A stretch of 64,000 bases of DNA from Hyalangium minutum (GCF_000737315.1 NZ_JMCB01000004.1:62001-126000); one strand, 5' to 3'; numbered from the stretch's first letter, positions 3,873 through 64,000 are shown. Notes: generated by a model from the sequence alone, not told the origin. A program made the numbers and translations.

Positions 3873-4856
3873 ATGGCTGGAAATTCTCCCCCCAGGCGCC
3901 AGGCGCCCTTCATCCTCGGGCTCGTCCTGATCCTCGCGGCGCTGCCGCTGGGGTACTTCGTGTTTCTCCACCAGCCTCCGCCGCCTCCCGTGGCGCCTCC
4001 GCCGCCGCCACCGCCGCCCGCGGTCGTCGAGCAGAAGGCTCCGGAGAAGCCCCAGGAACTGACGATCACCGATGTGAAGGGTGACGTCGAGGTCCGGCGC
4101 GCGGACGGCACGTGGGAGCCGGTGAAGCCCGGCCGCAAGCTGCTCCCTTCAGAGGTGCTGCGCACCAAGGACGGCGGGACGGCGTCTCTCCGTGGCGACG
4201 CCGCGGACGTGACAGTGGAGCCCAGCTCCGAGATGTCGATGGAGGAGATCTCCGCCACCGCGACCCGGTTCCTGCTCGTCAACGGTATGGCGACCGCCGA
4301 GGTGCACTCGGGCGTCCGGCACACCTTGGTGATGCGCGCCACGGGCAGTGATGCCGTGGCGACCACCACCGCAGGCAAGTTCGCCATGAGCAACAACGGC
4401 GCGGGCACCGTCGCCGTCGGCACGCAGGCGGGTGAGGTCACCTTCCAGGGCAACGGGAAGATCGTCATCGTCCGCGCCGGCCAGCAGTCCGTGGTGCGGC
4501 CGGGCTCCAGCGGCCCCTCCGAGCCGGTGAACATTCCCTCCAGCCTGCTGCGCAAGGTGCAGTGGCCCTCGGCGCGGCAGAACAAGCGCGAGATCATCGT
4601 TCAGGGCGAGGCCGAGCCCGGCACCCGCCTGGAGATCGGCGGACAGACGTTCTCTCCGGGCCAGGACGGCGTCTTCACTCGCACCGTGTCCCTGAAGGAA
4701 GGGGAGAACGACGTGAAGCTCAAGGTCTCCTCCGTGGGCGGCAACCAGGAGGAGGCGAGCCAGAAGTTCCACGTCGACACCCAGGCTCCCAAGTTCAAGG
4801 TGAAGATCCCCTGGAATAACGCAGGGGGTCAGACTTCACCCAATCCGAATCCCTGA
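3873..4856 (+). CDS. Membrane-anchored FecR-domain protein with Pro-rich linker and C-terminal Ig-like domain
   Basis: N-terminal TM, poly-Pro linker, FecR-like GDVEVRR...LLPSEVLRTKDGGTASL...VTVEPSSEM, C-terminal SLKEGENDVKL. Confidence 0.8.
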   Translation: MAGNSPPRRQAPFILGLVLILAALPLGYFVFLHQPPPPPVAPPPPPPPPAVVEQKAPEKPQELTITDVKGDVEVRRADGTWEPVKPGRKLLPSEVLRTKDGGTASLRGDAADVTVEPSSEMSMEEISATATRFLLVNGMATAEVHSGVRHTLVMRATGSDAVATTTAGKFAMSNNGAGTVAVGTQAGEVTFQGNGKIVIVRAGQQSVVRPGSSGPSEPVNIPSSLLRKVQWPSARQNKREIIVQGEAEPGTRLEIGGQTFSPGQDGVFTRTVSLKEGENDVKLKVSSVGGNQEEASQKFHVDTQAPKFKVKIPWNNAGGQTSPNPNP

Positions 4857-6886: not shown

Positions 6887-9800
6887 GGTGGATCGCCTGC
6901 ATGCTCGGCGTCGTGCTCCTGCCCTGGACCGTCCGGGCGCAGGGCGGGGTGGAGGATCCACCGGCGCTCTCGTCCACGGTGGCCGGGCGCGTGTGTGACG
7001 ATCGCGATGGAGATGGGCGCTGCGCTCCGGACGAGCCGGGCCTGGCCGGGGTGCGGCTGGTGCTCGCCACGGGCAGCGAGGTGCGGACGGATGCGCAGGG
7101 GCGCTACCACCTCACGGGCGTGGACTCGCGCACCCCAGACCGGACGGGCGGCGTGCACCTGCGGCCGGGGCGCCACCGCCTGCGCGTGGATCCGCGTACC
7201 TTGCCGCCCGGGAGCAGGCCGAGCCCCGAGGCCGTCACGGTGGAGGTGCCCTGGGGCGCCGTGGTGCTGCAGGACTTCGCGATCCGCGTCCGCGTGGAGT
7301 CCGTGAGGGCTCTGGCACCCCCGCCCGCCGAGGCCCCTCCCCAGGCGGAGATCCGAGATGAGGGCCTCGCCTTCGTCGTGACGGGGCAGGCCTCGCCGGG
7401 CGATCGCGTGCGCGTTGCGGACACCGAGGCCGAGGTGTCCGCGGATGGAATCTACCGCGCGACCGTGATGCTCGGGCCCGGAGAGAACGTGCTCTCCATC
7501 ACCGCGACCTCGCCGGGCGGAACAGCGCGCTTCTTCCGCCAGCGCGTCGATGCCGTACGGCGGCAGGGCAGTTGGCTCATCGCTCCCCGCGCCATCGAGC
7601 CTCAGGGCGTGCTGCGGCTGCCGGCCGGGCCCGAAGAGGAGGTGCCCAGCGGCATGGCCTCTCTGCGCGTGGAGGCTCCCAAGGGAACGCGCGTGCGCTC
7701 GCCTCAAGGTGAGGTAACGGTGGGGCCCCAGGGTGAGGCCGAAGTGCCGGTGACCCTCACGCCCGGGCGGAACACGGTGGCTCTCGAGCTGGAGCGGCCG
7801 GGTGAGGCGGCCCGGAAGGAGACGCTGGAGATCGTCGCCGCAGCACGGCCCTTCGCCGTGGGGTTACTGGATCTCGAGGGCGCATACTCGCTCGGCGAGG
7901 GGGACTTCCAGCTCCACGGGCGTGGCGCGGCCCATGTGGAGGCCCAGCTGGGTCAGCTTCAGCTGCTCGGTGAGGTGGACCTGCGCGACACGGACTTCCG
8001 GGCGCTCCACTCTCGGGATGCGTCGTCCTGGCTGCGGCCCCGCTTACCCGAGCGCTTCGAGCGCAGCCTGGACCCGGAGCGGGCCATCAACGAGTGGGGA
8101 GATAACTCCGTTTCCCTGGCGCCCAACGCCTCCGAGGGCCGTCTGCGCCTGGAGGCCCGGCATGAGGCGTTCGGGCGCGCGGGCCTCGGGACATACCGGG
8201 CCCTCATGGCCGAGGGCGAGGTGGGCCGCTACTACCAGCCTCTCTTTGGACCCTTCGCGGAGCTGAGGACGGAGGCGGGCCCCGTCCGCGTGGGCGTGAA
8301 CGCGTTCGCGGGCAGCCTCTCGGATCCCGTGCGGGGCCTGTCCTCCAAGCCCGCCCACGAGGAGCTGCGGGCCACTGGCGGCAGCCTCTACTTCCTGGGC
8401 GCGACGGCCATCGCGGAGGGCTCCGAGTTGCTGCGCGTGGAGCTGCGGGACGGGCTCACCGGACTGCCCCTGGCCGAGCAGCACCTGGTGCGCGGCAAGG
8501 ACTACGAGATCGATTACCTCGCGGGGCGCATCTTCCTGGCGCGGCCGCTGTCGTTCCTGGCGGGCGGCCCGTGGCTGCGCACCGATGCGCTGACGGCGGC
8601 TCCCGAGCCCGTGCTTGTCGCCGACTACGCCGCGCTCGAGCTGTCGGGCTCTCGGGACTCGGCCGGTGGCGAGGCTTGGGCGGAGTGGGGTGGTTCGCGC
8701 GTGTCTCTCTCTGGAGTGCGCGAGCGCCGCGCGGGGGCTCCTTATGGGCTCTTCTCTGGGCGGGCGCGGAGCAAGCTGGCGGGCTACACGCTGGAGGCCG
8801 AGGCGGCTCGCAGCTCCGGGCTGGCCATCTCGCCCGAGGTGTTCGGTGTCTCGGACGACGGCGGAATCACGTACCTGCGGCCCACGAGGGACCTGGCCAC
8901 AGGCGGCGACGCGCTCGGTGTCCGGGTGCATGGCCCAGGGCCGCTTGGAGGCGGCTCGGTGGACGCGGCGTTCCGGTGGCGGGACCGTGGCTTCTCCGAT
9001 GGCGCGCACACCGAGACCGCGCTCTTCCGGCAGCTCTCCCTGCGCGCCTCGCAGCCGGTGGGGGCTTTCCGCCTCACGCTGCTCGGGGATGATCGGACCA
9101 CCGCGGATCCGCGCTTGCCGTTTGCTTCCACCTCCATCTCCGCGCGCACACTGGGTCTGGGCGCCGCGTACGAGCGCGAGGACTGGAGCGTCCGTCTGGA
9201 GCTGAGGGACGCGTGGCTCCGCGCCTCCGAGCTGGCAGGGGAGGGGATCGCGCTGGAGGGTGGACGGACCTCGGTGGGCCTCCAGGGGCGTTTGCGCGTG
9301 CACGAGCGCGTGGTGCTCACGGCGGGGCATCGGCAAGCGCTCCTGATGCGCGGCGCGGGGTTGGGCAGTGTGGATGACTCGTTTGCTTCGGCGGGCGTGG
9401 ACGTGCAGCTGGACGAGGACACCACCGTGGGCGTCCGCGGCGGCTGGGGGCCGGAGCTGGGCCCGCAAGTCTGGGCGAACGCCGCCGTGCGCCGCGGGCC
9501 CGAGGTCTTCTATGGCGGCTACTCGGCGGACGTGGACGGTCCGGACTTCGGGGCGGGCCGCGCCGTCATGGGGGCTCGGACCGAGCTGGACGATGGGACG
9601 AGCGTCTTCGTGGAGGACGTCAGCGCGCACGATGCGAACGCGGTGCGGCAGGCCCGTGCGGTGGGCTTCCAGCAGGCCCTCTTCGGCGGGCTCCAGGTGG
9701 GGGGCCGCTACGAGCGCGGCGTCCGCCACCCGCTGGATCTGCCCTCTTCGCTGACGCGGGACAGCGGTGGGCTGTTCGGGCAGCTCGTGCGCGAGCGCTT

Positions 9801-53996: not shown

Positions 53997-54680
53997 ATGG
54001 TGCGTTTTCGAGATCGCTTCGAGGCGGGCCGTGTTCTCGCTGGGCGTCTGCACGCCTATGCCGGCCGCGGCGATGTGCTCGTGCTGGCGCTGCCACGTGG
54101 CGGCGTTCCCGTGGGCTTCGAGGTCGCGCGGAGGCTCGGTGCGCCTCTGGACGTGTTCGTGGTGCGCAAGCTCGGCACGCCGGGCCACGAGGAGCTGGCC
54201 ATGGGGGCCATCGCCACGGGGGGCGTCCGGGTCCTCAACGAGGACGTCGTCGAGAGCCTCAACATCCCCGAGAGGGCCATCGCGCGCGCCACCGAGCGCG
54301 AGGAGCTGGAGCTGGCCCGGAGGGAGCGGCTCTTCCGGGGCAGCAGACCGCCGCCCCGCATCGAGGGCCAGACGGTGATTCTCGTGGATGACGGGCTGGC
54401 CACCGGCTCCACCATGCGGGCTGGGCTCATGGCGCTGCGCCAGCGGGCGCCCGCTCGCCTCGTGGCCGCCGTCCCCGTGGGCGCCCCCGAGACATGTGCG
54501 GAACTCCAGGAGCTTGCAGACGAGGTGATCTGCGCCATCACGCCCGAGCCCTTCTTCGCGGTGGGCCAGTGGTACGGGGACTTCATGCAGACCTCCGACG
54601 AAGAGGTGTACGAACTGCTGGAGCGCGCGGCGCACGAGCATGAGGAGCGAGGGGCGGGGGCCTCTCCAGAAGCCCCTTGA
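53997..54680 (+). CDS. Phosphoribosyltransferase-family protein
   Basis: FRDRFEAG, LPRGGVPV, VRKLGTPGHEELAMGAI, ILVDDGLATG. Confidence 0.92.
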   Translation: MVRFRDRFEAGRVLAGRLHAYAGRGDVLVLALPRGGVPVGFEVARRLGAPLDVFVVRKLGTPGHEELAMGAIATGGVRVLNEDVVESLNIPERAIARATEREELELARRERLFRGSRPPPRIEGQTVILVDDGLATGSTMRAGLMALRQRAPARLVAAVPVGAPETCAELQELADEVICAITPEPFFAVGQWYGDFMQTSDEEVYELLERAAHEHEERGAGASPEAP

Positions 54681-54740
54681 GCCCAGCGGGAGAGGCGTGC
54701 GGCAGGTGCCTGCCCCGCCTGAAGAGCGGAGGGACAGACC

Positions 54741-55445
54741 ATGGCGGAGCGCGGTGTCACGGAACACGAGGTGCAGGTCGAGGCGGAGCCCGGTGTGCGG
54801 CTGGAGGGCACCTTGAGCGTGCCGGAGATGGCCTTGGGCGTGGTGCTGTTCGCCCACGGCAGTGGCAGTAGCCGGTTCAGTCCTCGCAACCGGTACGTCG
54901 CCAGCGTGCTCCAGCGTGCGGGGTTGGCGACGCTCCTCATCGATCTGCTGACGGCGGGCGAGGAGGAATCCGAGCGGTGGACGCGCCACTTGCGCTTCGA
55001 CATCGAACTGCTGGCGCGGCGGCTCATCGGAGCCAAGCAGTGGCTGATGCAGGCGCCGGAGCTGCGAGGACAGTCCATCGGCTTGTTCGGGTCGAGCACG
55101 GGGGCGGCGGCTGCGCTCGTGGCCGCGGCGCGTGAGCCCGAGTCCATGGGTGCCGTGGTGTCTCGGGGAGGCCGGCCAGACCTGGCGGGCCTCGTGCTGC
55201 CCCATGTGCGGGCGCCCACGCTGCTCATCGTGGGCGGGGACGACGTGGAGGTGCTGGAGCTCAACCGCGAGGCGTTGGATGCGCTGCGCACCGTCAAGCG
55301 GTTGGAGGTGGTTCCGGGGGCGAGCCACCTCTTCGAGGAGCCGGGGACGCTCGAGCAGGTAGCCAGGCTGGCCCGGGACTGGTTCCTCCAGCAGTTTGCC
55401 GCCGCTTCGCGCGAGAGCCCGGCGGGCGAGCCGCCGTCCTGGTGA
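54741..55445 (+). CDS. Dienelactone hydrolase-family alpha/beta hydrolase
   Basis: FAHGSGSSRFSPRN, GSSTG, SRGGRPDLA, PGASHLFEEPG. Confidence 0.9.
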   Translation: MAERGVTEHEVQVEAEPGVRLEGTLSVPEMALGVVLFAHGSGSSRFSPRNRYVASVLQRAGLATLLIDLLTAGEEESERWTRHLRFDIELLARRLIGAKQWLMQAPELRGQSIGLFGSSTGAAAALVAAAREPESMGAVVSRGGRPDLAGLVLPHVRAPTLLIVGGDDVEVLELNREALDALRTVKRLEVVPGASHLFEEPGTLEQVARLARDWFLQQFAAASRESPAGEPPSW

Positions 55446-55458
55446 AGCGCCAGGACCC

Positions 55459-55552
55459 TGGCAAAATGCCTGGGTGGGTGTGGCACGTTGCCACGGTCTC
55501 TCGTGCCTTGAGGTGGAGTCACGTGGGCGGTCACGCAGGTTCGTAAGTTGCT
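55459..55552 (+). promoter_or_regulatory. Tandem palindromic enhancer + sigma54 promoter, copy 1 (HK-EBP operon)
   Basis: TGGCAAAATGCCT 55459, TGGCACGTTGCCA 55481, 44 nt, AGGTTCGTAAGTTGCT 55537-55552. Confidence 0.7.
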
Positions 55553-55594
55553 AAGGATGGCGGCCCCCCCTTGGGACGTTGAGCAGTCCACTCC

Positions 55595-57715
55595 ATGCGC
55601 CATCCTCTGGTCCCCATCCTCCTGCTCTGTGCCGCGCTCGCCGCTGTGGGAGGAGGCGTGCTCATGGTCCTCCAGCGCAGCCGCGCCGAGCTGGTGCAGC
55701 AGTTTGCCCGCGACCGTCAGGCCCAGCTCGATGAGGCGGCTCGGGGTGTGGCCGAGGCACTGGAGGACGTCAGCGAGGATCTCCTCTTCGCCGGAGAGCT
55801 CCTCTCCCAACCCGGAACCTCCGAAGATCATCGGCGCGAGCTGAGGGCCCTGTTGGAGGTCATCGGTCAGTACAAGACCATTGCCTCCTATGACGCGGCC
55901 GGCATCGAGCAGCTCCGGCTGGTGGATCGGCGTGCCGACCCCCTGGTCGTCCAGGGAAAGTTCTTCCCCGCCCTCTCGGAGACTGCGCTCCGGGCGCTTG
56001 AGCGGCCCCCAGGGGACATCACCAGCTCTCCGCCTCTGGCCGTCGGCGCGGAGGGGGGCTGGCTGCGCATCCTCGCCACCGCGATCCCCAGCGAGGAAGG
56101 CCAGCCTCGAGGTGCTGTCGCCGTCCTGGTGGACACGCAGTCCCTCTTCGCTCCGCTCAAGATCGTCACCTCGGATCCCGAGGCACGTCTGCTGCTCATC
56201 GGCGCGCACGGACGGCCCAGCCCTGCCAGTGATGCAGGGCTCGCTGACTGGTACCGGCGGCTGGAGACAGAGCAGGGGCTCGTCCCCACGTACGCCGAGC
56301 TGGCCTCGAAGATGAAGAGTGGCGAGCGCGGCACGCTGATGATCAGCGAGCAAGAAGCGGAACGGCTGGGCCTGGGAAGGGCCGAGGCCGTCGCCGCCTT
56401 CACCGCCATGCAGCTCAAGGGCGGCAGCCACTGGTCCGCCGCCACCCTGGTCTCCACCCATACACTGCGCTCCCACGAGCGGGGGCTCATCTTCCGTCTG
56501 TCGCTGGCGGCCCTCCTGGTGACGCTGTTCCTGGTGGCGTTCGGGATCTACGTCTTCGTGGCCCAGCGCCGCGCTGTAGCCCTGCGCGAGAGCCGCCGGC
56601 ATGCGGATCGGCTCGCGCACCTGCACGACAAGACCCAGAAGATCCTCGACAACATCCCCACTGGGGTGCTGGCCCTGACCGCCGAAGGACGCATCAGCGC
56701 TGTGAACCAGGCCCTGCGCTCCCGGATGCCCTCCCGTGTCGTCGGCATCTCCCTGGCCGAGGCCTTCCCCCATGCGCCCGAGCCGGTGATGAGCCGGATG
56801 CAGGGGCTCGTGGAGGCCGCCACCCGTGAGACCCGTGTGCGCAGCCTCTTGGGAGAACCGCTGGCCCTCTTCGGCGAGGAAGGCCAGTACAGCATCCACG
56901 CCGTGCCGCTGGAGGCCCGCGAGCCCGAGGTGCGCACGCTCCTCGTCGTCGAGGATCTCAGCAACCTCCGCGCCCTGGAGACCCAGCTCCTGCGCGCCGA
57001 GAAGTTCGCCACCGTGGGCGTACTCGCCGCGGGCATTGCTCACGAGATCGGCACGCCCCTGGGCGTGGTCCGAGGCCGCGCGGAGTATGTCCTCGGCAAG
57101 CTGGGCTCAGGCCATCCTCAGGCAGCCGGTGTGGGCGTCATCATCGAGCAAATCGATCATGTGAGCCGGACCATCCGCCAGCTGCTCGACTTCTCGCGGC
57201 TCCAGCCCGCGGCGGTGCGTCCGGTGGCGCTCGGGCCGCTGCTGCGCGACGTGAGCGAGCTGCTCCGCCTGGAGGCCGAGCGGCGTCAGGTCCGCCTCGA
57301 GTGGGAGCTCCCAGAGGGAGTGCCCGCGATCGCCGCTGATCCCGATCAGATCCAGCAGGTGCTCGTGAACCTGGCGCTCAATGCGTGTGATGCGTGCAGT
57401 GCCGGAGGCCGTGTCCGCCTGAAGGCCGCGGCGCCGGATGCGTCCTCCTCGAGCGCCTGGGGGCTCGTGCCGGTCACCGTCGAGGACGATGGGTGCGGAA
57501 TTCCGCCGGAGAGTCTCAACCAGGTGTTTGATCCCTTCTTCACGACGAAGAAGCGAGGGCAGGGAACCGGGCTCGGCTTGACGGTGGTCGCGCACGTCGT
57601 CCGCAACCATGGTGGGCGGGTGGAACTGGAGAGCAAGCCCGGGCGTGGCACGTGTGTCACCGTGCTCTGGCCCGCGGCGGGGCCCGCCGTGACAGAGGAG
57701 CAGCATGGCATCTAA
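55595..57715 (+). CDS. Membrane sensor histidine kinase (periplasmic Cache-like, PAS, HisKA, HATPase)
   Basis: Two TMs; AHEIGTPLG; NLALNA; DDGCGI; FFTTK; GTGLGL. Confidence 0.93.
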   Translation: MRHPLVPILLLCAALAAVGGGVLMVLQRSRAELVQQFARDRQAQLDEAARGVAEALEDVSEDLLFAGELLSQPGTSEDHRRELRALLEVIGQYKTIASYDAAGIEQLRLVDRRADPLVVQGKFFPALSETALRALERPPGDITSSPPLAVGAEGGWLRILATAIPSEEGQPRGAVAVLVDTQSLFAPLKIVTSDPEARLLLIGAHGRPSPASDAGLADWYRRLETEQGLVPTYAELASKMKSGERGTLMISEQEAERLGLGRAEAVAAFTAMQLKGGSHWSAATLVSTHTLRSHERGLIFRLSLAALLVTLFLVAFGIYVFVAQRRAVALRESRRHADRLAHLHDKTQKILDNIPTGVLALTAEGRISAVNQALRSRMPSRVVGISLAEAFPHAPEPVMSRMQGLVEAATRETRVRSLLGEPLALFGEEGQYSIHAVPLEAREPEVRTLLVVEDLSNLRALETQLLRAEKFATVGVLAAGIAHEIGTPLGVVRGRAEYVLGKLGSGHPQAAGVGVIIEQIDHVSRTIRQLLDFSRLQPAAVRPVALGPLLRDVSELLRLEAERRQVRLEWELPEGVPAIAADPDQIQQVLVNLALNACDACSAGGRVRLKAAAPDASSSSAWGLVPVTVEDDGCGIPPESLNQVFDPFFTTKKRGQGTGLGLTVVAHVVRNHGGRVELESKPGRGTCVTVLWPAAGPAVTEEQHGI

Positions 57716-59078
57716 GGAACGCATCCTGGTCGTCGACGACCACGTGGAGATGGGGCGGATGCTTCAGGATCCCCTCACGGACGAGGGGTATGAAGTGGAG
57801 CTCGCCACGGGAGGCTCGGAGGCCATCCGGCTCGTGCGTGCCCGCCCGTTCGACGCGGTCCTGAGCGATCTGCGCATGGAGCAGGTGGACGGCTTCGACG
57901 TGCTGGCCGCGGTGCGCGCCATGGACCCCGAGGTGCCCGTGCTGCTGATGACGGCCTTCGGGAACGTCGAGAGCGCGGTGGAGGCGATGCGGCGGGGCGC
58001 CTGGCACTACTTCACCAAGCCCTTTCGGCTGGAGGAGGTGCTCATCTACCTGCGCCGGGCCCTGGACGAGCGGCGGCTGCGCGCGGAGAACCGGGTGCTG
58101 CGCAAGGCCGCGGGGCCGGGCGGACTCGGGGCGCTGGTGGGCCGGAGCGCCGCCATGCGCAGCCTGTACGAGATGATCGAGCCCGTGGCCCACTCGGGTG
58201 CACCCGTGCTGCTCCGGGGCGAGAGCGGCAGCGGCAAGGAGCTGGTGGCGCGGGCGCTGCACTCGGAGGGGCCTCGGGCCGCCGAGCCCTTCGTGGCCGT
58301 CAACTGCACCGCTCTGCCGCACGCACTGCTGGAGAGCGAGCTGTTCGGCCACGTGAAGGGCGCCTTCACCGGGGCCACGACGCCCCGGCGGGGGCTCTTC
58401 GTCGAGGCGGACAAGGGCACGCTCTTCCTGGACGAGATCGGCGACATGCCCTCCGAGCTCCAGGCCAAGCTGCTGCGGGTGCTGGAGGACGGCGAGGTGC
58501 GCGCGGTGGGCGCGGATTCCAGCCGCAAGGTGGAGGTGCGCATCGTCGCGGCCACCCACCAGGACCTGGAGATGCGGGTCCGCGAGGGCCGCTTCCGGGC
58601 GGATCTCTTCTACCGCCTCAACGTCGTCACCCTGCGGATTCCGCCCCTGCGCGAGCGGCGCGAGGACATTCCGCTGCTCGTGGAGCACTTCGTCTCGCGG
58701 GCCCGTGCGAGGAACCCCCGCTCCAAGGTGACGGCGCTGTCGCCCGAGGTGGTCTCCGCGCTGGGCGCCATGCCGTGGCCGGGCAATGTGCGCGAGCTGG
58801 AGAACCTGGTCGAGCGGCTGGTGGTGCTCATTCCCCGGGAGATGGTGGAGGTGGGCGATCTCCGGCTTCACGCACCGGCGGTGAGTCCCGAAGCCCACCC
58901 GCTCGCCCTGGCCCAGGAGGGGGTGTGGCCCCTGCGCCAGCTCGAGGGCGAGTACATCTCCTGGGTGGTGGCCCACTGTGGGGGCAACAAGACGCGGGCG
59001 GCGGAGCTGCTCGGCATCGATGTCTCCACCATCCACCGCCGCGAGCGGGAGAGGGGTTCTGGCAATCCGCCACGGTGA
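57705..59078 (+). CDS. sigma54-dependent response regulator (REC-AAA+-Fis HTH enhancer-binding protein)
   Basis: GESGSGKE, ELFGHVKGAFTGA, LFLDEIG, WPGNVRELEN, GNKTRAAELLGI. Confidence 0.96.
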   Translation: MASKERILVVDDHVEMGRMLQDPLTDEGYEVELATGGSEAIRLVRARPFDAVLSDLRMEQVDGFDVLAAVRAMDPEVPVLLMTAFGNVESAVEAMRRGAWHYFTKPFRLEEVLIYLRRALDERRLRAENRVLRKAAGPGGLGALVGRSAAMRSLYEMIEPVAHSGAPVLLRGESGSGKELVARALHSEGPRAAEPFVAVNCTALPHALLESELFGHVKGAFTGATTPRRGLFVEADKGTLFLDEIGDMPSELQAKLLRVLEDGEVRAVGADSSRKVEVRIVAATHQDLEMRVREGRFRADLFYRLNVVTLRIPPLRERREDIPLLVEHFVSRARARNPRSKVTALSPEVVSALGAMPWPGNVRELENLVERLVVLIPREMVEVGDLRLHAPAVSPEAHPLALAQEGVWPLRQLEGEYISWVVAHCGGNKTRAAELLGIDVSTIHRRERERGSGNPPR

Positions 59079-59154
59079 GGGTGGCGGGATACCAGGGTGG
59101 ACGGTGGGAGGAGGGGGACTCCCGAGGGAGGAGGGCTCGGGCACGGACGTTGCT
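59060..59154 (+). promoter_or_regulatory. Tandem palindromic enhancer + sigma54 promoter, copy 2 (pal operon); overlaps the EBP 3' end
   Basis: TGGCAATCCGCCA 59060, TGGCGGGATACCA 59082, 45 nt, GGGCACGGACGTTGCT 59139-59154. Confidence 0.78.
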
Positions 59155-59166
59155 TCAACGAGGGGC

Positions 59167-59694
59167 ATGCGCTCATACCTTCTTCCCCTCGTCCTGCTCG
59201 CGATTGGCGCGAGCGCCTGTGCCACGAAGACCGCGGCGACCACCTCCACGGAGGGCGTCTCCTCGGTGGACACCTCGCCGCGTCCCGGCCCGGTGAAGCC
59301 CGCTCCGGCGCCCGCGCCGGTGGCCGAGCTGTCACCGCTGGACTTCGGCCCCATCTACTACGAGCTGGACTCGGCGACCCTGCGGGCGGACTCGCGGGAG
59401 ATGCTCGAGCGGGCCGCGGAGGCCCTGCGGAAGCGTCCCGAGGCGCGCGTGACGATCTCCGGGCACACCTGTGAGCTGGGCACCACCGAGTACAACCTGG
59501 CGCTGGGCCAGCGGCGGGCCGCCTCCGCTCGGGACTACATGGTGAAGCTCGGCGTGGAGCCGGCGCGCATCGGTCTCGTGTCCTATGGCGAGGAGCGTCC
59601 GGCCGAGCAGGGCACGGGCGAGAGTGTCTGGTCCAAGAACCGCCGCAGCGAGTTCACGGTCACTGTGGCCCACGCCCGGGCGGGTACGCCGTAG
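59167..59694 (+). CDS. pal: Pal/OmpA-family peptidoglycan-associated lipoprotein
   Basis: Lipobox ASA-C; ISGHTCELGTTEYNLALGQRRA, SYGEERP, KNRRSEF. Confidence 0.88.
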   Translation: MRSYLLPLVLLAIGASACATKTAATTSTEGVSSVDTSPRPGPVKPAPAPAPVAELSPLDFGPIYYELDSATLRADSREMLERAAEALRKRPEARVTISGHTCELGTTEYNLALGQRRAASARDYMVKLGVEPARIGLVSYGEERPAEQGTGESVWSKNRRSEFTVTVAHARAGTP

Positions 59695-59696
59695 CC

Positions 59697-60074
59697 GTGG
59701 GGGCTCGACAGGCCGGTCAGGCGCTGCTGTTGGGCGCCGACGAGTCACTGGCCGCGCTCCTGGCGGATGTTCTCTCGGAGGTGGGCATCTCCCTGCACGT
59801 GGGGGAAGGGCCTCCCGCTCGTCCGGATCTCGTGCTCGTCCAGATCGAGCGCGGCGAGAGCCTCCTGAGCGCGCTGCAGGGCGCCCGGGATGGGACGTAC
59901 CCGGCACCGGTCTTCGTCCTGCTGCCGTTCGCGGACGATCGAATGATGCAGCGCGCGCTGCGGCTGGGCGCTCGGGGGTGCTTCGCGCTCGGGCAGCCGC
60001 TCGAAGTGCTGCGGCGGATGGTGCTCTCGGTGCTCCCCGCCGTGGGTCCGCTCGCGCCCAAGAGGATTCGATGA
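59697..60074 (+). CDS. Stand-alone degenerate receiver-like protein
   Basis: Receiver topology (RPDLVLVQIE, PVFVLL, ALRLGARGCF), but Gln at the phospho-Asp position and no conserved Lys. Confidence 0.6.
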   Translation: MGARQAGQALLLGADESLAALLADVLSEVGISLHVGEGPPARPDLVLVQIERGESLLSALQGARDGTYPAPVFVLLPFADDRMMQRALRLGARGCFALGQPLEVLRRMVLSVLPAVGPLAPKRIR

Positions 60075-60535
60075 GTGATTCCGAGCAGGTGACAGGACCT
60101 CAGTTGGGGCAAGAGGAGACTCTCCTCTTCAACGAACAGGGCGTGCTCGTCACGAGCGAGCGCGTGGTCGCCTCCGGCCGCACGTGGCGAGTGGGCGAGC
60201 TGGTCGGGGTGGGCTCCATTCGCCGCAGTCCGCGCGTCCTCCCCTGGCTGGTGATCCTGGTGCTGGGCGCGATCGTGGGGTTGCCGGTGCTCAGCTCGCT
60301 CCTGGTCAGCCCCCACGCGCCGGGCAGCCTGAGCTACGACGTGGTGCTGGCGCTGGCGGGGACGGCCATCTTCGCCTCCATCGCTGCGCTCGTGGTGGTG
60401 GGAGACAGCTACTGGCTCGTGCTGCGCACGCGGCAGCGAGAAGGGCACGTTCTCCGCAGCCGGGACCCCCAGCTCATCTCGAAGCTGGTGACCGTGGTGG
60501 GCGAGGCCGCGGAGGCCGCGCGCCAGCGGCGCTGA
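60071..60535 (+). CDS. Small two-TM membrane protein (DUF6232-like)
   Basis: ATGA overlap; GVLVTSERVVASGRTWRVGEL, two TMs, SRDPQLISKLV. Confidence 0.7.
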   Translation: MSDSEQVTGPQLGQEETLLFNEQGVLVTSERVVASGRTWRVGELVGVGSIRRSPRVLPWLVILVLGAIVGLPVLSSLLVSPHAPGSLSYDVVLALAGTAIFASIAALVVVGDSYWLVLRTRQREGHVLRSRDPQLISKLVTVVGEAAEAARQRR

Positions 60536-60577
60536 GCAGGCAGAGCAGGCCGGGGCTGGGAGGCCCCGGGCGAGACG

Positions 60578-61426
60578 TCACGGAACGGTGATCTCCGCCG
60601 TGCCCACCTTGCGGCCGGCGGAGATGGAGATCAGGGCGCGCCCAGGCCCCACCGCCGTGGCCTTGCCGGAGCGGGAGATCCGGACGACGGAGGCATTCGA
60701 GGTGAACCAGTGGACGGGCACGCCTTCCACGGGCTTCCCCCGGCTGTCACGCACCTTGGTCTGGAGCTGAAGCTCCTGGCCTCGCTTCAAGGTAGACGTG
60801 CCCGGGTCGATGGACACCTGCGAGAGCGCGGGCATGACGAGGACGGACAGCTCCTGCCGCAAGTCTCCCAAGGTGGCCGTGAGCACGGCGGTGCCTGGGG
60901 CCACGCCGACGACCTTCCCGGCCTCGATGCGCGCGATGTGCTCGTCGCTGCTGCTCCACTCGGGAGTGCCATGGCGGATGCGCTTGCCCCGCTCATCCAG
61001 CACCGTGGCGGTGAGCCGCTCGGGGCGTCCCACCTCGATGAAGCTCCCATTCCCCGCCTGAAGCACCAGCTTGCCGGGAATGGACACCACGAAGCTCAGG
61101 CTGGCCCGGGCCTTCCCGCCGGAGACGTGGATGGTGGCGCGCCCGGTGCTCCGCGCGGTGACCACCCCGTTCTCCACCGTGGCGACCTCTGGCGCGGAGC
61201 TGGACCAGCTCAGCCGGGGCTCCGCCAGCCGTCGTCCCTGGGCATCGTGCGCCATGGACTCCAGCCTGATGGCTTGGCCTCGCTCCCCCAGCAGGCGAAC
61301 CTCCGGCTCCACGAGCGTCAGCTGCTCGGGAACCGGATCGCACCCGATGAGCAGGGCGCTCGAGAGGAAGCACAGCAGGGGGCGGCGGAGCAGCGGGGGC
61401 ACGATCATTCCGAGGCGCATGGGCAT
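60578..61426 (-). CDS. Lipoprotein with three Big_2 Ig-like domains (start may be 61420 or 61408)
   Basis: Lipobox LIG-C; WSSSAPEVATV, WSSSDEHIARI, WFTSNASVVRI. Confidence 0.88.
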   Translation of the reverse strand: MPMRLGMIVPPLLRRPLLCFLSSALLIGCDPVPEQLTLVEPEVRLLGERGQAIRLESMAHDAQGRRLAEPRLSWSSSAPEVATVENGVVTARSTGRATIHVSGGKARASLSFVVSIPGKLVLQAGNGSFIEVGRPERLTATVLDERGKRIRHGTPEWSSSDEHIARIEAGKVVGVAPGTAVLTATLGDLRQELSVLVMPALSQVSIDPGTSTLKRGQELQLQTKVRDSRGKPVEGVPVHWFTSNASVVRISRSGKATAVGPGRALISISAGRKVGTAEITVP

Positions 61427-61440
61427 GCGGCGGCAGGGGG

Positions 61441-61722
61441 CTACTTGCGGCCCGTCTTCTTGGGGGGCGGGGGGGCAGGCCTCTCCGCGGCGAGCTTCAG
61501 CTCATCACGCTCCCGCGACACCTCCGTGAGGGTGTCTTCCAAATCCGCGACCTTGGCCTTCAAGGTCTTGTTCTCCGCGCGCAACACGCGCGACTCCGCG
61601 CGCAGCGAGTCGGTCTCCGAGCGCAGTGAGGTCGCCTCCGCGCGCACCTGCCTCAGCTCCTTGGAGGGACCACATGCCGAGAGCAGCCCTCCGGCTAGCA
61701 CTGCCATCACCCAGGTCTTCAT
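61441..61722 (-). CDS. Small coiled-coil lipoprotein, paralog 2
   Basis: MKTWV...LSA-CGPSKEL, heptad repeats, ERDELKLAA, tail PPPPKKTGRK. Confidence 0.85.
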   Translation of the reverse strand: MKTWVMAVLAGGLLSACGPSKELRQVRAEATSLRSETDSLRAESRVLRAENKTLKAKVADLEDTLTEVSRERDELKLAAERPAPPPPKKTGRK

Positions 61723-61790
61723 CAACGCCAAGCTCCTCGAGGGCTCGCGCCAGCGGCCTTCCGCTGGAGGCGGCCCACCCGCGAGTGCAG

Positions 61791-61884
61791 AGCAAGCCGT
61801 GTGCCCACAGCCCAGCTGCTCTGAGTCGCCCGGCTCTGGGCGCGGAACCGTGGCAAGACGCCAGACCTCCCTGGCGTGTTGCCA
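61791..61884 (-). promoter_or_regulatory. Tandem palindromic enhancer + sigma54 promoter, copy 3
   Basis: Minus strand: TGGCAACACGCCA, TGGCGTCTTGCCA (21 bp apart), 45 nt, GGGCACACGGCTTGCT. Confidence 0.8.
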
Positions 61885-61912
61885 TGCCTCTGTGGCACGC
61901 CCGGGGCCTGCG

Positions 61913-62188
61913 CTACTTCTTGGCCGTGGTGCCTGGCTTCTTCGGGGCCGCCGGAGCGGGAGCCGGTGTGGCCGCTGGGGCGGGCTTCGCCGCGGCGAGC
62001 TTCAGCTGGTCGCGCTCCTGGCGCACCTTCTGGAAATTCCCCTCCAGCTCGGCGAGCTGGGTCTTCAGCTTCGTGTTCTCCTGGCGGAGGGCATCCGCGT
62101 CTCCCTTGGCCCGCTCCAGCTCTTTGGAAGGTCCGCACGCCACCAGGGGAGCGAGCGCCAGCACCAGGGCTGCCATCCACGCCTTCAT
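61913..62188 (-). CDS. Small coiled-coil lipoprotein, paralog 1
   Basis: MKAWM...LVA-CGPSKEL, heptad repeats, ERDQLKLAA, tail APKKPGTTAKK; GGAGG RBS. Confidence 0.87.
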   Translation of the reverse strand: MKAWMAALVLALAPLVACGPSKELERAKGDADALRQENTKLKTQLAELEGNFQKVRQERDQLKLAAAKPAPAATPAPAPAAPKKPGTTAKK

Positions 62189-62258
62189 TCGTCTTCAACC
62201 TCCTGACAGGTCCGAGCCGGAGTCCGTCTCCGGGCTTGGCCTGAGCGGGAGGAGCCAA

Positions 62259-62353
62259 AGCAAGACGCGTTCCTCCCGTGCGTCCCGAGGGGCGCCCTGC
62301 GTGAGCTCAAGAAAACCGTGGCAGGAAGCCATGGCCACCCAGGTGTGTTGCCA
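62259..62353 (-). promoter_or_regulatory. Tandem palindromic enhancer + sigma54 promoter, copy 4
   Basis: Minus strand: TGGCAACACACCT, TGGCTTCCTGCCA (22 bp apart), 45 nt, AGGAACGCGTCTTGCT. Confidence 0.75.
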
Positions 62354-62430
62354 TGGCTGGATGCTCCCTTTTTCCGTTGTGTCGAGGGGGGCACCGCCCC
62401 ATCCTGAGGAAGGCTGTCATCAACGTTCCC

Positions 62431-64000
62431 ATGACTTCCTCCCCCTCCGAGCAGGAACAGGCCCTCCTGGGCGAGATCGCTCGCCTTCGCGCACTGGAGG
62501 ACGCCCTTCGCGTGGCCAACGAGCGCATCCAGCTGGCGCTGAACGCTGGAGCGGTGATTGGCACCTGGGTGTGGGACGTCCGAAGGGACCACTTCACGGC
62601 CGATGAGCGCTTTGCCCGGTCCTTCTCAATCAATCCGGAACTGGCGGCGCAAGGCCTTCCGTTGAGCGTGGTCATCACCTCCATCCACCCGGAGGACCGT
62701 CCTCGAATCGAAGCCCTGGTCGCCCGGACGGCGGAGATGGGGGGGCCCTATCGCGCCGAGTACCGGACACGCCAGCTCGATGGCTCCTACCTCTGGGTGG
62801 AGGCCAATGGCCACTGCGAGCACGGACCCGACGGCAAGCCGGACCGTTTCCCGGGGGTGCTGATCAACATCGACGAGCGGAAGAAGGCGGAGCTGCGCCA
62901 GGCCGCCCTCGTCGAGGTGGGCGACAAGCTTCGAGAGCTGGGCGACGCCGGCGAGGTGGCCCACGCCGCCATGGAGGTGGTCGGGCGGGTCATCGGCGTC
63001 ATCCGCGCCGGCTATGGCCGGGTCGACCCGGCCCTGCGAAAGGTGGAGATCGAGCAAGACTGGGTCAGTGCTCCCGGCGCGCTCAGCGTCCGGGGCGTGC
63101 ACGAGTTCACCCGGTACGGCACCTACATCGAGAACCTCGAGCGGGGCGAGGTGGTCAGCATCCGGGACATCGAGGTGGATTCCCGGACCATGGTGGGCGT
63201 GGAGAACCTGCGGCGGTTTGGCATCCGCGCGATGGTCAACGTGCCGTTGCTGGAGCAGGGGCGCCTGGTCGCGGTCCTGTTCCTTCATGACCGGGTGGTG
63301 CGCGACTGGTCTCCGGACGAGATCGAGTTCATGCGCAACGTGGCCGACCGCATCTGGGCAGCCAGCGAGCGCATCAAGGCCGTGGCGGAGCTGCGGCGGG
63401 CCAAAGAGACGCTCGAGCAGCGTGTCGCTCAGCGCACCCGCGAGCGCGATCGCCTCTGGAACGTCTCGCAGGATCTGCTGCTGGTGGCGGACTTCGAGGG
63501 CCGCTTCCTCAGCGTGAACCCCGCGTGGACCTTGGTGCTGGGCTGGACGGAAGCGGAGCTGTTGGGGAAGACCTCCCGCTGGCTGGAGCACCCGGAGGAC
63601 GGAGGAAAGACGCAGGCCGAGGTGGCGAGCCTGGCGGCGGGCTTCGCGACGCTGCGGTTCGAGAACACGTTCCGGCACAAGAACGGCACGTACCGCACCT
63701 TGTCCTGGACGGCGGTGCCGGTGCCGGAGGAGGGCGTGCTCTACGCCGTGGCGCGCGACATCACCGAGCAGCGCCAGACCGAGGATCAGCTGCGCCAGGC
63801 CCAGAAAATGGAGGCCATTGGCCAGCTGACGGGCGGCGTGGCGCACGACTTCAACAACCTGCTCCAGGTCGTCAGCGGCAACCTCCAGCTGCTCCAGCGG
63901 GACGTGGGCGGCAACCCGAACGCCCTGCGCCGCCTGCAGACGGCCGTCAGCGCCGTGGAGCGAGGCGCCAAGCTCGCGTCCCAGCTGCTCGCGTTCTCCC
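62431..64000 (+). CDS. Cytoplasmic PAS-GAF-PAS histidine kinase, 3' end outside window (absent from ORF track)
   Basis: ATG 62431 in frame with IGTWVWDV, SIHPED, GAF region, VNPAW, and H box QKMEAIGQLTGGVAHDFNNLL. Confidence 0.93.
   Translation, partial: MTSSPSEQEQALLGEIARLRALEDALRVANERIQLALNAGAVIGTWVWDVRRDHFTADERFARSFSINPELAAQGLPLSVVITSIHPEDRPRIEALVARTAEMGGPYRAEYRTRQLDGSYLWVEANGHCEHGPDGKPDRFPGVLINIDERKKAELRQAALVEVGDKLRELGDAGEVAHAAMEVVGRVIGVIRAGYGRVDPALRKVEIEQDWVSAPGALSVRGVHEFTRYGTYIENLERGEVVSIRDIEVDSRTMVGVENLRRFGIRAMVNVPLLEQGRLVAVLFLHDRVVRDWSPDEIEFMRNVADRIWAASERIKAVAELRRAKETLEQRVAQRTRERDRLWNVSQDLLLVADFEGRFLSVNPAWTLVLGWTEAELLGKTSRWLEHPEDGGKTQAEVASLAAGFATLRFENTFRHKNGTYRTLSWTAVPVPEEGVLYAVARDITEQRQTEDQLRQAQKMEAIGQLTGGVAHDFNNLLQVVSGNLQLLQRDVGGNPNALRRLQTAVSAVERGAKLASQLLAFS

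Follow-up and report, generated by a model that had tools for sequence, protein, structure and literature searches.

A repeated enhancer–promoter cassette points to a probable sigma-54-dependent regulon for cell-envelope proteins in Hyalangium minutum

How does a myxobacterial two-component system select the genes it controls? Myxobacteria have dozens of sigma-54 activators, few of them with a known DNA motif or target set. In this work, we address the question for a 64-kb stretch of the Hyalangium minutum genome (NZ_JMCB01000004.1, 62001–126000; hereafter the window, to which all positions refer unless another locus is named), where one arrangement of paired inverted repeats and a predicted sigma-54-type promoter recurs four times among the genes of a sensor histidine kinase, an NtrC-type activator and a group of envelope proteins. 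The arrangement, tandem dyads plus a -24/-12 promoter, is the textbook one for NtrC-type activators. By combining pattern searches, shuffled controls and comparison with related loci, we conclude that the region is probably a two-component, sigma-54-dependent regulon for cell-envelope proteins.

All elements were checked by reading positions 54500–64000 and by pattern searches. The four copies of the arrangement, which we call cassettes, share one layout: a 13-bp box, 8–9 bp, a second 13-bp box, 44–45 bp and then GG-N10-GC ending in TTGCT (Table 1). They span 55459–55552 and 59060–59154 on the plus strand and 61884–61791 and 62353–62259 on the minus strand, with box starts 22, 22, 21 and 22 bp apart in copies 1 to 4, and every copy lies a short way ahead of a gene or operon, either between genes or at a gene end, and points toward the start codon. 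A first-pass annotation, made from the bare sequence, had listed these eight boxes, their spacings and gaps and the four promoter motifs, all of which are present and correct to the base. Its view of the four sites as one enhancer-plus-sigma-54-promoter cassette also holds, as do its placing of copy 2 inside the last activator codons (distal box at 59060–59072, stop codon at 59076–59078) and its assignment of the copies to the kinase/activator operon, the Pal-like operon, lipoprotein 2 plus Big_2, and lipoprotein 1, with gene content judged by Pfam.

Both halves of the cassette have the expected form. In the promoter half, GG and GC are exactly 10 nt apart in all four window copies and in 19 of the 19 instances that we collected, and most copies read GGCA(C/T)G-N4-TTGCT (GGAACG in copy 4), in agreement with the extended sigma-54 consensus TGGCACG-N4-TTGC(T/A) as quoted in PMC9765219. 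The upstream half matches an NtrC-type enhancer, for which two or more helically phased dyad sites some 70–150 bp ahead of the promoter are typical, with 13-bp dyads that start 21–22 bp apart and are centred about 52 and 73–74 bp upstream of the GG.

We then compared the layout, written as a regular expression, with 1,000 dinucleotide-preserving shuffles of the 64-kb window. Box pairs are expected 0.003 times per window and were observed five times (four sites, one also matching on the opposite strand), and the full layout, observed four times, occurred in none of the shuffles. When mismatches were tolerated in a more permissive scan, 0.36 copies were expected and four observed. With a composite position-weight matrix built from 16 cassette instances, the four copies score 61–66 bits and stand far above the remainder of the 64 kb, which holds no fifth copy: the next best hits, all under 20 bits, are these four sites again in a shifted register. 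As a negative control, we scanned 903 kb of unrelated NtrC-family loci (our loci L001–L080, at most 50% identical to the activator) and found no promoter preceded by a box pair that matched at 14 or more of 16 positions. Across a whole database the regular expression is less selective: the complete metagenome collection returned 40 matches, 34 of which look like chance or coding matches. In a separate repeat search, copy 1 against copy 4 was the longest inverted repeat of the region.

To place the cassette in evolutionary context, orthologous loci of relatives were fetched and scanned for it. With the same spacing and before the same gene classes, it recurs in Stigmatella, Hyalangium, Myxococcus, Pyxidicoccus and Corallococcus. 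It lies upstream of the kinase gene (at 4780) and the OmpA gene (at 8356) in Stigmatella aurantiaca (L081), upstream of OmpA in a Hyalangium contig (L084), and before the kinase gene, OmpA and, 4 kb away, the gene of a 101-amino-acid (aa) coiled-coil lipoprotein in a Myxococcaceae metagenome-assembled genome (L085). M. xanthus (L082), Pyxidicoccus (L086) and Corallococcus (L088) carry it upstream of an operon for a pseudo-receiver and a DUF6232 protein; in Corallococcus an extra kinase gene stands between activator and cassette, and the cassette remains with the target operon. Five metagenome contigs, one of them from the same contig as L084, have it upstream of OmpA orthologues. The strongest evidence for a regulon, as opposed to a local repeat, comes from Stigmatella sp. 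ncwal1 (L129, a lipoprotein–lipoprotein–Big_2 cluster) and Hyalangium versicolor (L130, two lipoprotein genes), where the cassette precedes the lipoprotein genes and kinase and activator are absent within 8 kb. The first-pass description of the regulon as complete and local is unsupported: the scan covered 64 kb, and in these two species the lipoprotein targets lie elsewhere in the genome.

Conservation is concentrated in the boxes and the promoter. Mean pairwise identity between copies is 0.72–0.94 in the boxes, 0.67–0.83 in the promoter and 0.39–0.49 in the 40-nt spacer, and the information content over 19 instances is roughly 19 bits per box and 18 bits for the promoter. Box variants are specific to the class of downstream gene: OmpA and pseudo-receiver operons have TGGCAAT(C/T)CGCCA followed by TGGCG..AT(A/G)CCA, and lipoprotein genes TGGCAAC...CC(A/T) followed by T(G/T)GC(G/T)TC(C/T)TGC(C/A)A. 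As both boxes are usually trailed by (C/G)GG(T), the repeated unit is really about 17 bp long.

Which protein reads these boxes? The window encodes an activator with all the marks of an NtrC-type enhancer-binding protein, with Pfam matches to Response_reg (E value 2.4e-26), Sigma54_activat (3.4e-69) and HTH_8 (4.5e-09), a GAFTGA motif at residue 219 and the Walker A sequence GSGKE at residue 175. Its partner kinase has, by hydropathy, transmembrane segments at residues 3–28 and 296–325, with some 270 aa of periplasmic domain between them and the PAS_4, HisKA and HATPase_c domains after the second. The periplasmic domain has no match in Pfam and no sequence match in the PDB, and its single-sequence AlphaFold model, with a predicted local distance difference test (pLDDT) score of 41.7, is unusable. 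Orthologues of the activator occur across Archangiaceae and Myxococcaceae, with identities of 91% in Hyalangium, 85% in Stigmatella aurantiaca, 82% in Pyxidicoccus, 79% in Corallococcus and 75% in M. xanthus. The M. xanthus locus L082 encodes a 702-aa kinase and a 452-aa activator beside divergent TetR, CoA-transferase (two), dehydrogenase and HMG-CoA synthase genes. These neighbours are the aibR-mvaS operon, mxan_4263-4267 (PMC5389471), and the adjoining kinase and activator are therefore MXAN_4262 and MXAN_4261, of which, judged by identity and synteny, the window pair are the orthologues.

Adjacency, conserved synteny and the apparent autoregulatory copy point to the adjacent activator as the protein that binds the cassette, and all four predicted promoters would depend on sigma-54. 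On this model, the membrane kinase would sense a signal through its periplasmic domain and phosphorylate the activator, whose dimers would occupy the two imperfect dyads, which have the consensus TGGC-N5-GCCA and, as a rule, (C/G)GGT after it. Because the dyad starts are 21–22 bp apart, that is two helical turns, both dimers would lie on the same face of the DNA, where the pair could nucleate the ATPase ring that remodels sigma-54 RNA polymerase at the GGCA(C/T)G-N4-TTGCT promoter; with this promoter fixed 44–45 bp downstream of the proximal box, the box centres would fall at about -76 and -98. The outputs would be four: the kinase/activator operon itself, with positive feedback in this lineage only; the operon of the Pal-like lipoprotein, the cytoplasmic pseudo-receiver and the DUF6232 membrane protein; lipoprotein 2 with the Big_2 lipoprotein; and lipoprotein 1. 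Their joint effect is likely a remodelling or reinforcement of the connection between outer membrane and peptidoglycan upon an envelope signal. The autoregulation proposed in the first-pass annotation may hold for this window, where a copy does precede the kinase gene, as in three lineages in all, and does not extend to M. xanthus (L082), Pyxidicoccus (L086), Corallococcus (L088) and one Hyalangium contig (L084), where the cassette upstream of the kinase is absent.

Precedent for the architecture comes from M. xanthus NmpR, an NtrC-like, autoregulated activator with two GCGCA-N5-TGCGC dyads (S1 and S2) upstream of sigma-54 promoters; dyads and promoter are both needed, and its regulon, found by motif search, was confirmed by electrophoretic mobility shift assays and reporters (PMC11841059). 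The NmpR sites differ from those described here in sequence (TGGC-N5-GCCA in the window) and in spacing (14–15 bp apart compared to 8–9 bp), and the NmpR regulon concerns oxygen use whereas that of the window concerns envelope proteins. The Nla28 motif, CT(C/G)CG(C/G)AG, is likewise unlike TGGC-N5-GCCA. The impression that the window motif resembles no described myxobacterial activator site is therefore upheld for both published M. xanthus motifs that we compared.

Several explanations compete with binding by the adjacent activator. The promoters may be real sigma-54 enhancer-promoters whose boxes are bound wholly or jointly by another regulator, most likely an NtrC-type paralogue with the same recognition helix, so that the systems cross-regulate and the adjacent activator shares control with other inputs or does not bind the boxes. 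The ..LGIDVSTIHRRER.. helix is indeed identical in all paralogues examined; in M. xanthus, L082 and L131 are both systems of this type and carry variants of the cassette, Archangium violaceum has at least five such proteins among the activator matches, and the lipoprotein targets in L129 and L130 are unlinked to any activator. Against this, at eight loci from different genera the cassette lies directly beside or inside the 3' end of an activator orthologue, in three lineages it precedes the kinase/activator operon itself, and the paralogue-B sites have clearly diverged (about 30 against 61–66 bits), which suggests some partitioning of specificity. We consider a paralogous binder unlikely, though a serious contender. 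Much further from the evidence is the idea that the boxes are secondary or decoy sites for the sigma-54 holoenzyme, given their resemblance to the -24 element TGGCAC, or sites of an unrelated repressor. Several boxes do contain TGGCAC or TTGC (for example, TGGCACGTTGCCA of copy 1), but GG and GC within a box are 6 nt apart and not 10, so that no box fits the -24/-12 geometry. Symmetric dyads, paired at an interval of two helical turns and set at a constant distance from a proper -24/-12 element, have the layout of activator sites, as NmpR illustrates; we regard this idea as very improbable. Least credible is that the four copies are a dispersed repeat, such as a repetitive extragenic palindrome (REP) or an element like a miniature inverted-repeat transposable element (MITE), or a chance pattern with no regulatory role. 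A GC-rich genome holds many short palindromes, and the regular expression has its roughly 34 apparently unrelated metagenome matches, yet none of the 1,000 shuffles reproduced the four observed copies, which are intergenic or at gene ends and face start codons. The conservation pattern effectively refutes such an origin, being restricted to boxes and promoter while the spacer diverges, with the cassette found before orthologous genes across genera.

The reading that we favour, a regulon driven by the adjacent activator, has its own difficulties. The promoters are predictions from sequence. At least three paralogue groups share one recognition helix, ..GIDVSTIHRRER.., without any change, and in two of these groups no boxes lie nearby; the kinase-upstream copy is missing from four of the eight kinase/activator loci that were read upstream; and the -24 element of copy 1 is weak (AGGTTCG), its orthologues carrying GGTACG or GGTATG. 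At the paralogous locus L131, the OmpA promoter has TTGT or TTGA at -12, and some members may thus be weak or decaying. An envelope-stress role, finally, is proposed from gene content, and the kind of signal and the physiological function are proposals too.

The L131 locus is a second, paralogous one in M. xanthus, with genes for a 704-aa kinase, a 457-aa activator, a 180-aa OmpA lipoprotein and a 160-aa protein; L083 is its equivalent in another Myxococcus. At 4239–4330 and 7893–7990 of L131 we observed the box–box–45–promoter architecture with diverged boxes (GCAA for GCCA) that score about 30 bits. Near the paralogue loci of Archangium lansingense (L087) and Melittangium boletus (L133), the boxes were not found.

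Table 1 Features of the regulon in the H. minutum window.
Feature	Position	Strand	Basis and remarks
Copy 1 distal box TGGCAAAATGCCT	55459–55471	+	Sequence reading, pattern search
Copy 1 proximal box TGGCACGTTGCCA	55481–55493	+	Sequence reading, pattern search
Copy 1 sigma-54-type promoter (predicted) GGTTCGTAAGTTGCT	55538–55552	+	Gap from proximal box 44 nt; kinase ATG at 55595
Sensor histidine kinase, 706 aa	55595–57715	+	PAS_4, HisKA, HATPase_c by Pfam
NtrC-type enhancer-binding protein, 457 aa	57705–59078	+	Receiver, sigma-54 AAA+, Fis-type HTH_8; 11-nt overlap with kinase stop
Copy 2 distal box TGGCAATCCGCCA	59060–59072	+	Doubles as coding sequence of activator C-terminal tail (..GNPP..)
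Copy 2 proximal box TGGCGGGATACCA	59082–59094	+	Just past activator stop
Copy 2 sigma-54 promoter (predicted) GGCACGGACGTTGCT	59140–59154	+	Gap 45 nt; ATG at 59167, 13 nt after TTGC
Pal-like OmpA-domain lipoprotein, 175 aa	59167–59694	+	Pfam; lipobox ..GASAC
Pseudo-receiver protein (probable), 125 aa	59697–60074	+	No Pfam match; profile matches PDB receiver domains only
DUF6232 membrane protein	60071–60535	+	Pfam; start overlaps preceding stop (ATGA)
Big_2 (bacterial Ig-like) lipoprotein, 282 aa	60578–61426	-	Pfam; downstream of lipoprotein 2
Lipoprotein 2, 93 aa	61441–61722	-	Lipobox, coiled coil, Pro-rich tail, end ..GRK
Copy 3 sigma-54 promoter (predicted) GGCACACGGCTTGCT	61791–61805	-	Gap 45 nt; downstream ATG at 61722
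Copy 3 proximal box TGGCGTCTTGCCA	61851–61863	-	Pattern search
Copy 3 distal box TGGCAACACGCCA	61872–61884	-	Pattern search
Lipoprotein 1, 91 aa	61913–62188	-	Lipobox, coiled coil, Pro/Ala-rich tail, end ..AKK; paralogue of lipoprotein 2
Copy 4 sigma-54 promoter (predicted) GGAACGCGTCTTGCT	62259–62273	-	Gap 45 nt; downstream ATG at 62188
Copy 4 proximal box TGGCTTCCTGCCA	62319–62331	-	Pattern search
Copy 4 distal box TGGCAACACACCT	62341–62353	-	Pattern search

How does the system relate to better-known ones? In combining a receiver–AAA+–HTH_8 activator with a PAS–HisKA kinase, it resembles E. coli ZraSR (HydHG) and AtoSC, and ZraSR is an envelope stress system. The activator is nevertheless no equivalog of AtoC, ZraR or NtrC, for which it scores 445, 410 and 444 bits against NCBIfam cut-offs of 714, 760 and 559; as it falls below them, the 'HydG' labels on JGI records of its orthologues are generic. 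The psp system offers another parallel, as a sigma-54 activator for a small, compact set of membrane or envelope stress genes, but PspF has no receiver domain and is controlled by PspA, and the target proteins are unrelated.

The nearest relatives with published biochemistry are in M. xanthus. HK_4262 and NtrC_4261 (MXAN_4262/MXAN_4261), purified as comparators for CrdS and CrdA, showed autophosphorylation and rapid cognate phosphotransfer in vitro (Willett & Kirby 2011, PMC3147164). They share with the window pair the domain composition, the kinase length (702 compared to 706 aa), 75% identity in the activator and a downstream pseudo-receiver/DUF6232 operon with the same cassette, whereas the M. 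xanthus locus has neither a Pal-like gene nor a cassette upstream of the kinase. In a literature search, we found no targets, motif or phenotype for MXAN_4261. The same study describes crdS-crdA-crdB (kinase, activator and OmpA lipoprotein) as conserved in Myxococcales, suggests an envelope stress input and finds CrdA highly similar to NtrC_4261, with CrdA targets not known in 2011 (PMC3147164). The gene order of kinase, NtrC-type activator and OmpA-domain lipoprotein gene is also that of the window. We considered and rejected orthology with CrdS/CrdA: these are Mxan_5184 and Mxan_5153 whereas the counterpart by synteny is MXAN_4261/4262, and CrdS has 578 aa compared to 702–706 aa, with an unmatched layout. 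The M. xanthus OmpA homologue at L131, which we took up as a candidate crdB, was rejected as well, as it belongs to the second paralogue locus.

What the analysis adds is a predicted motif and regulon for MXAN_4262/4261 and its orthologues, a pair that is conserved but uncharacterised and for which purified proteins exist. The kinase/activator pair is thereby linked to outer-membrane and peptidoglycan proteins, which gives a lead for the related CrdSAB system, and the fixed 44–45 bp spacing with class-specific box variants makes a tidy model for enhancer–promoter geometry. It leaves the understanding of sigma-54 activation unchanged, and is useful for myxobacterial signalling while unsurprising in principle.

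What, then, might the regulated proteins do? The 175-aa lipoprotein is Pal-like and not canonical Pal: it scores 120.8 bits against the TIGR02802 cut-off of 125.35, and its neighbours are the kinase/activator and pseudo-receiver genes, with no tol genes. Its mRNA is probably leaderless. In six of the seven genomes compared for the OmpA class (the window at 59151–59169, L081, L084, L085, L092, L106 and L118), the ATG comes 13 nt after TTGC, a distance that puts the expected transcription start, about 12 nt past the GC, 0–2 nt before the ATG; in the exception, L081, two ATGs in tandem follow at 10 and 14 nt. The 125-aa protein encoded next is a probable pseudo-receiver, as a seven-sequence profile finds DesR as its best PDB match (E value 0.006) and the position of the phospho-accepting Asp holds Q, H or M. 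Its gene always adjoins the DUF6232 gene.

The two small regulated lipoproteins look like Braun's lipoprotein (Lpp) in design, with a lipobox Cys (..VACG and ..SACG), a coiled coil of about 50 aa, for which the Pfam matches are weak, and a C-terminal Lys. Lipoprotein 2 and all nine retrieved sequences of the lipoprotein 1 family, the window's own among them, finish with (R/K)K, comparable to the ..YRK terminus of E. coli Lpp. Against the Lpp/OprI model NF040598, lipoprotein 1 alone matches, at 23.1 bits and below the cut-off of 43, and a homologue search places the family narrowly, in Hyalangium and Stigmatella relatives only. A repeat search aligns 117 nt of the two lipoprotein genes at 71% identity, and within lipoprotein 2 (61572–61646, minus strand) three 21-nt periodic DNA repeats encode three heptad-multiple coiled-coil units. 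A bolder proposal, which we rate as rather improbable, is that the regulon serves specifically to tether the outer membrane to peptidoglycan: a sigma-54 two-component switch would co-induce the Pal-like lipoprotein and Lpp-like coiled-coil lipoproteins with an invariant C-terminal (R/K)K. If true, Lpp-type tethers would exist outside the gamma-proteobacteria and under inducible control, and a rigid, invariant enhancer–promoter geometry with a leaderless Pal-like mRNA would be a further unusual feature.

A few observations concern the DNA around the cassettes. We searched all four copies for a third box that they might share beyond the distal one and found a candidate in copy 1 only: the box-like sequence TGGTGAAGCGCCA at 55440–55452, which starts 19 bp upstream of the copy 1 distal box, where the preceding hydrolase gene has its stop codon, which the sequence overlaps. 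Around 59118–59131, 10–20 nt upstream of the -24 GG, there is a weakly conserved CTCC(C)GAGGGAG-like inverted repeat, seen also in other OmpA-class copies, which could mark another protein-binding site or bent DNA. A divergent gene for a PAS-GAF-PAS kinase begins at 62431, and inspection by eye revealed no sigma-54 promoter leading toward it from copy 4. A search of 54000–64000 against Rfam gave no match to a known RNA family.

The activator tail ..SGNPPR (59057–59078) is the translation of the copy 2 distal box. The M. xanthus and Corallococcus activators end earlier (..RERERG and ..RERER), with the box intergenic there, and the tail seems to be a side effect of the DNA element. In these two genomes, the kinase gene and the aib operon share a promoter region that lacks the cassette; the interval from aibR to the kinase gene contains palindromes CCTACCGACCGGTAGGT (about 4800–4830 in L082 and 7740–7790 in L088), presumably AibR operators. 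On one further metagenome contig of 73% GC (L125, 465–558), a cassette with a weak proximal box precedes the gene of a 654-aa lipoprotein, CotH-like by eye, which may be an extra regulon member in another myxobacterium.

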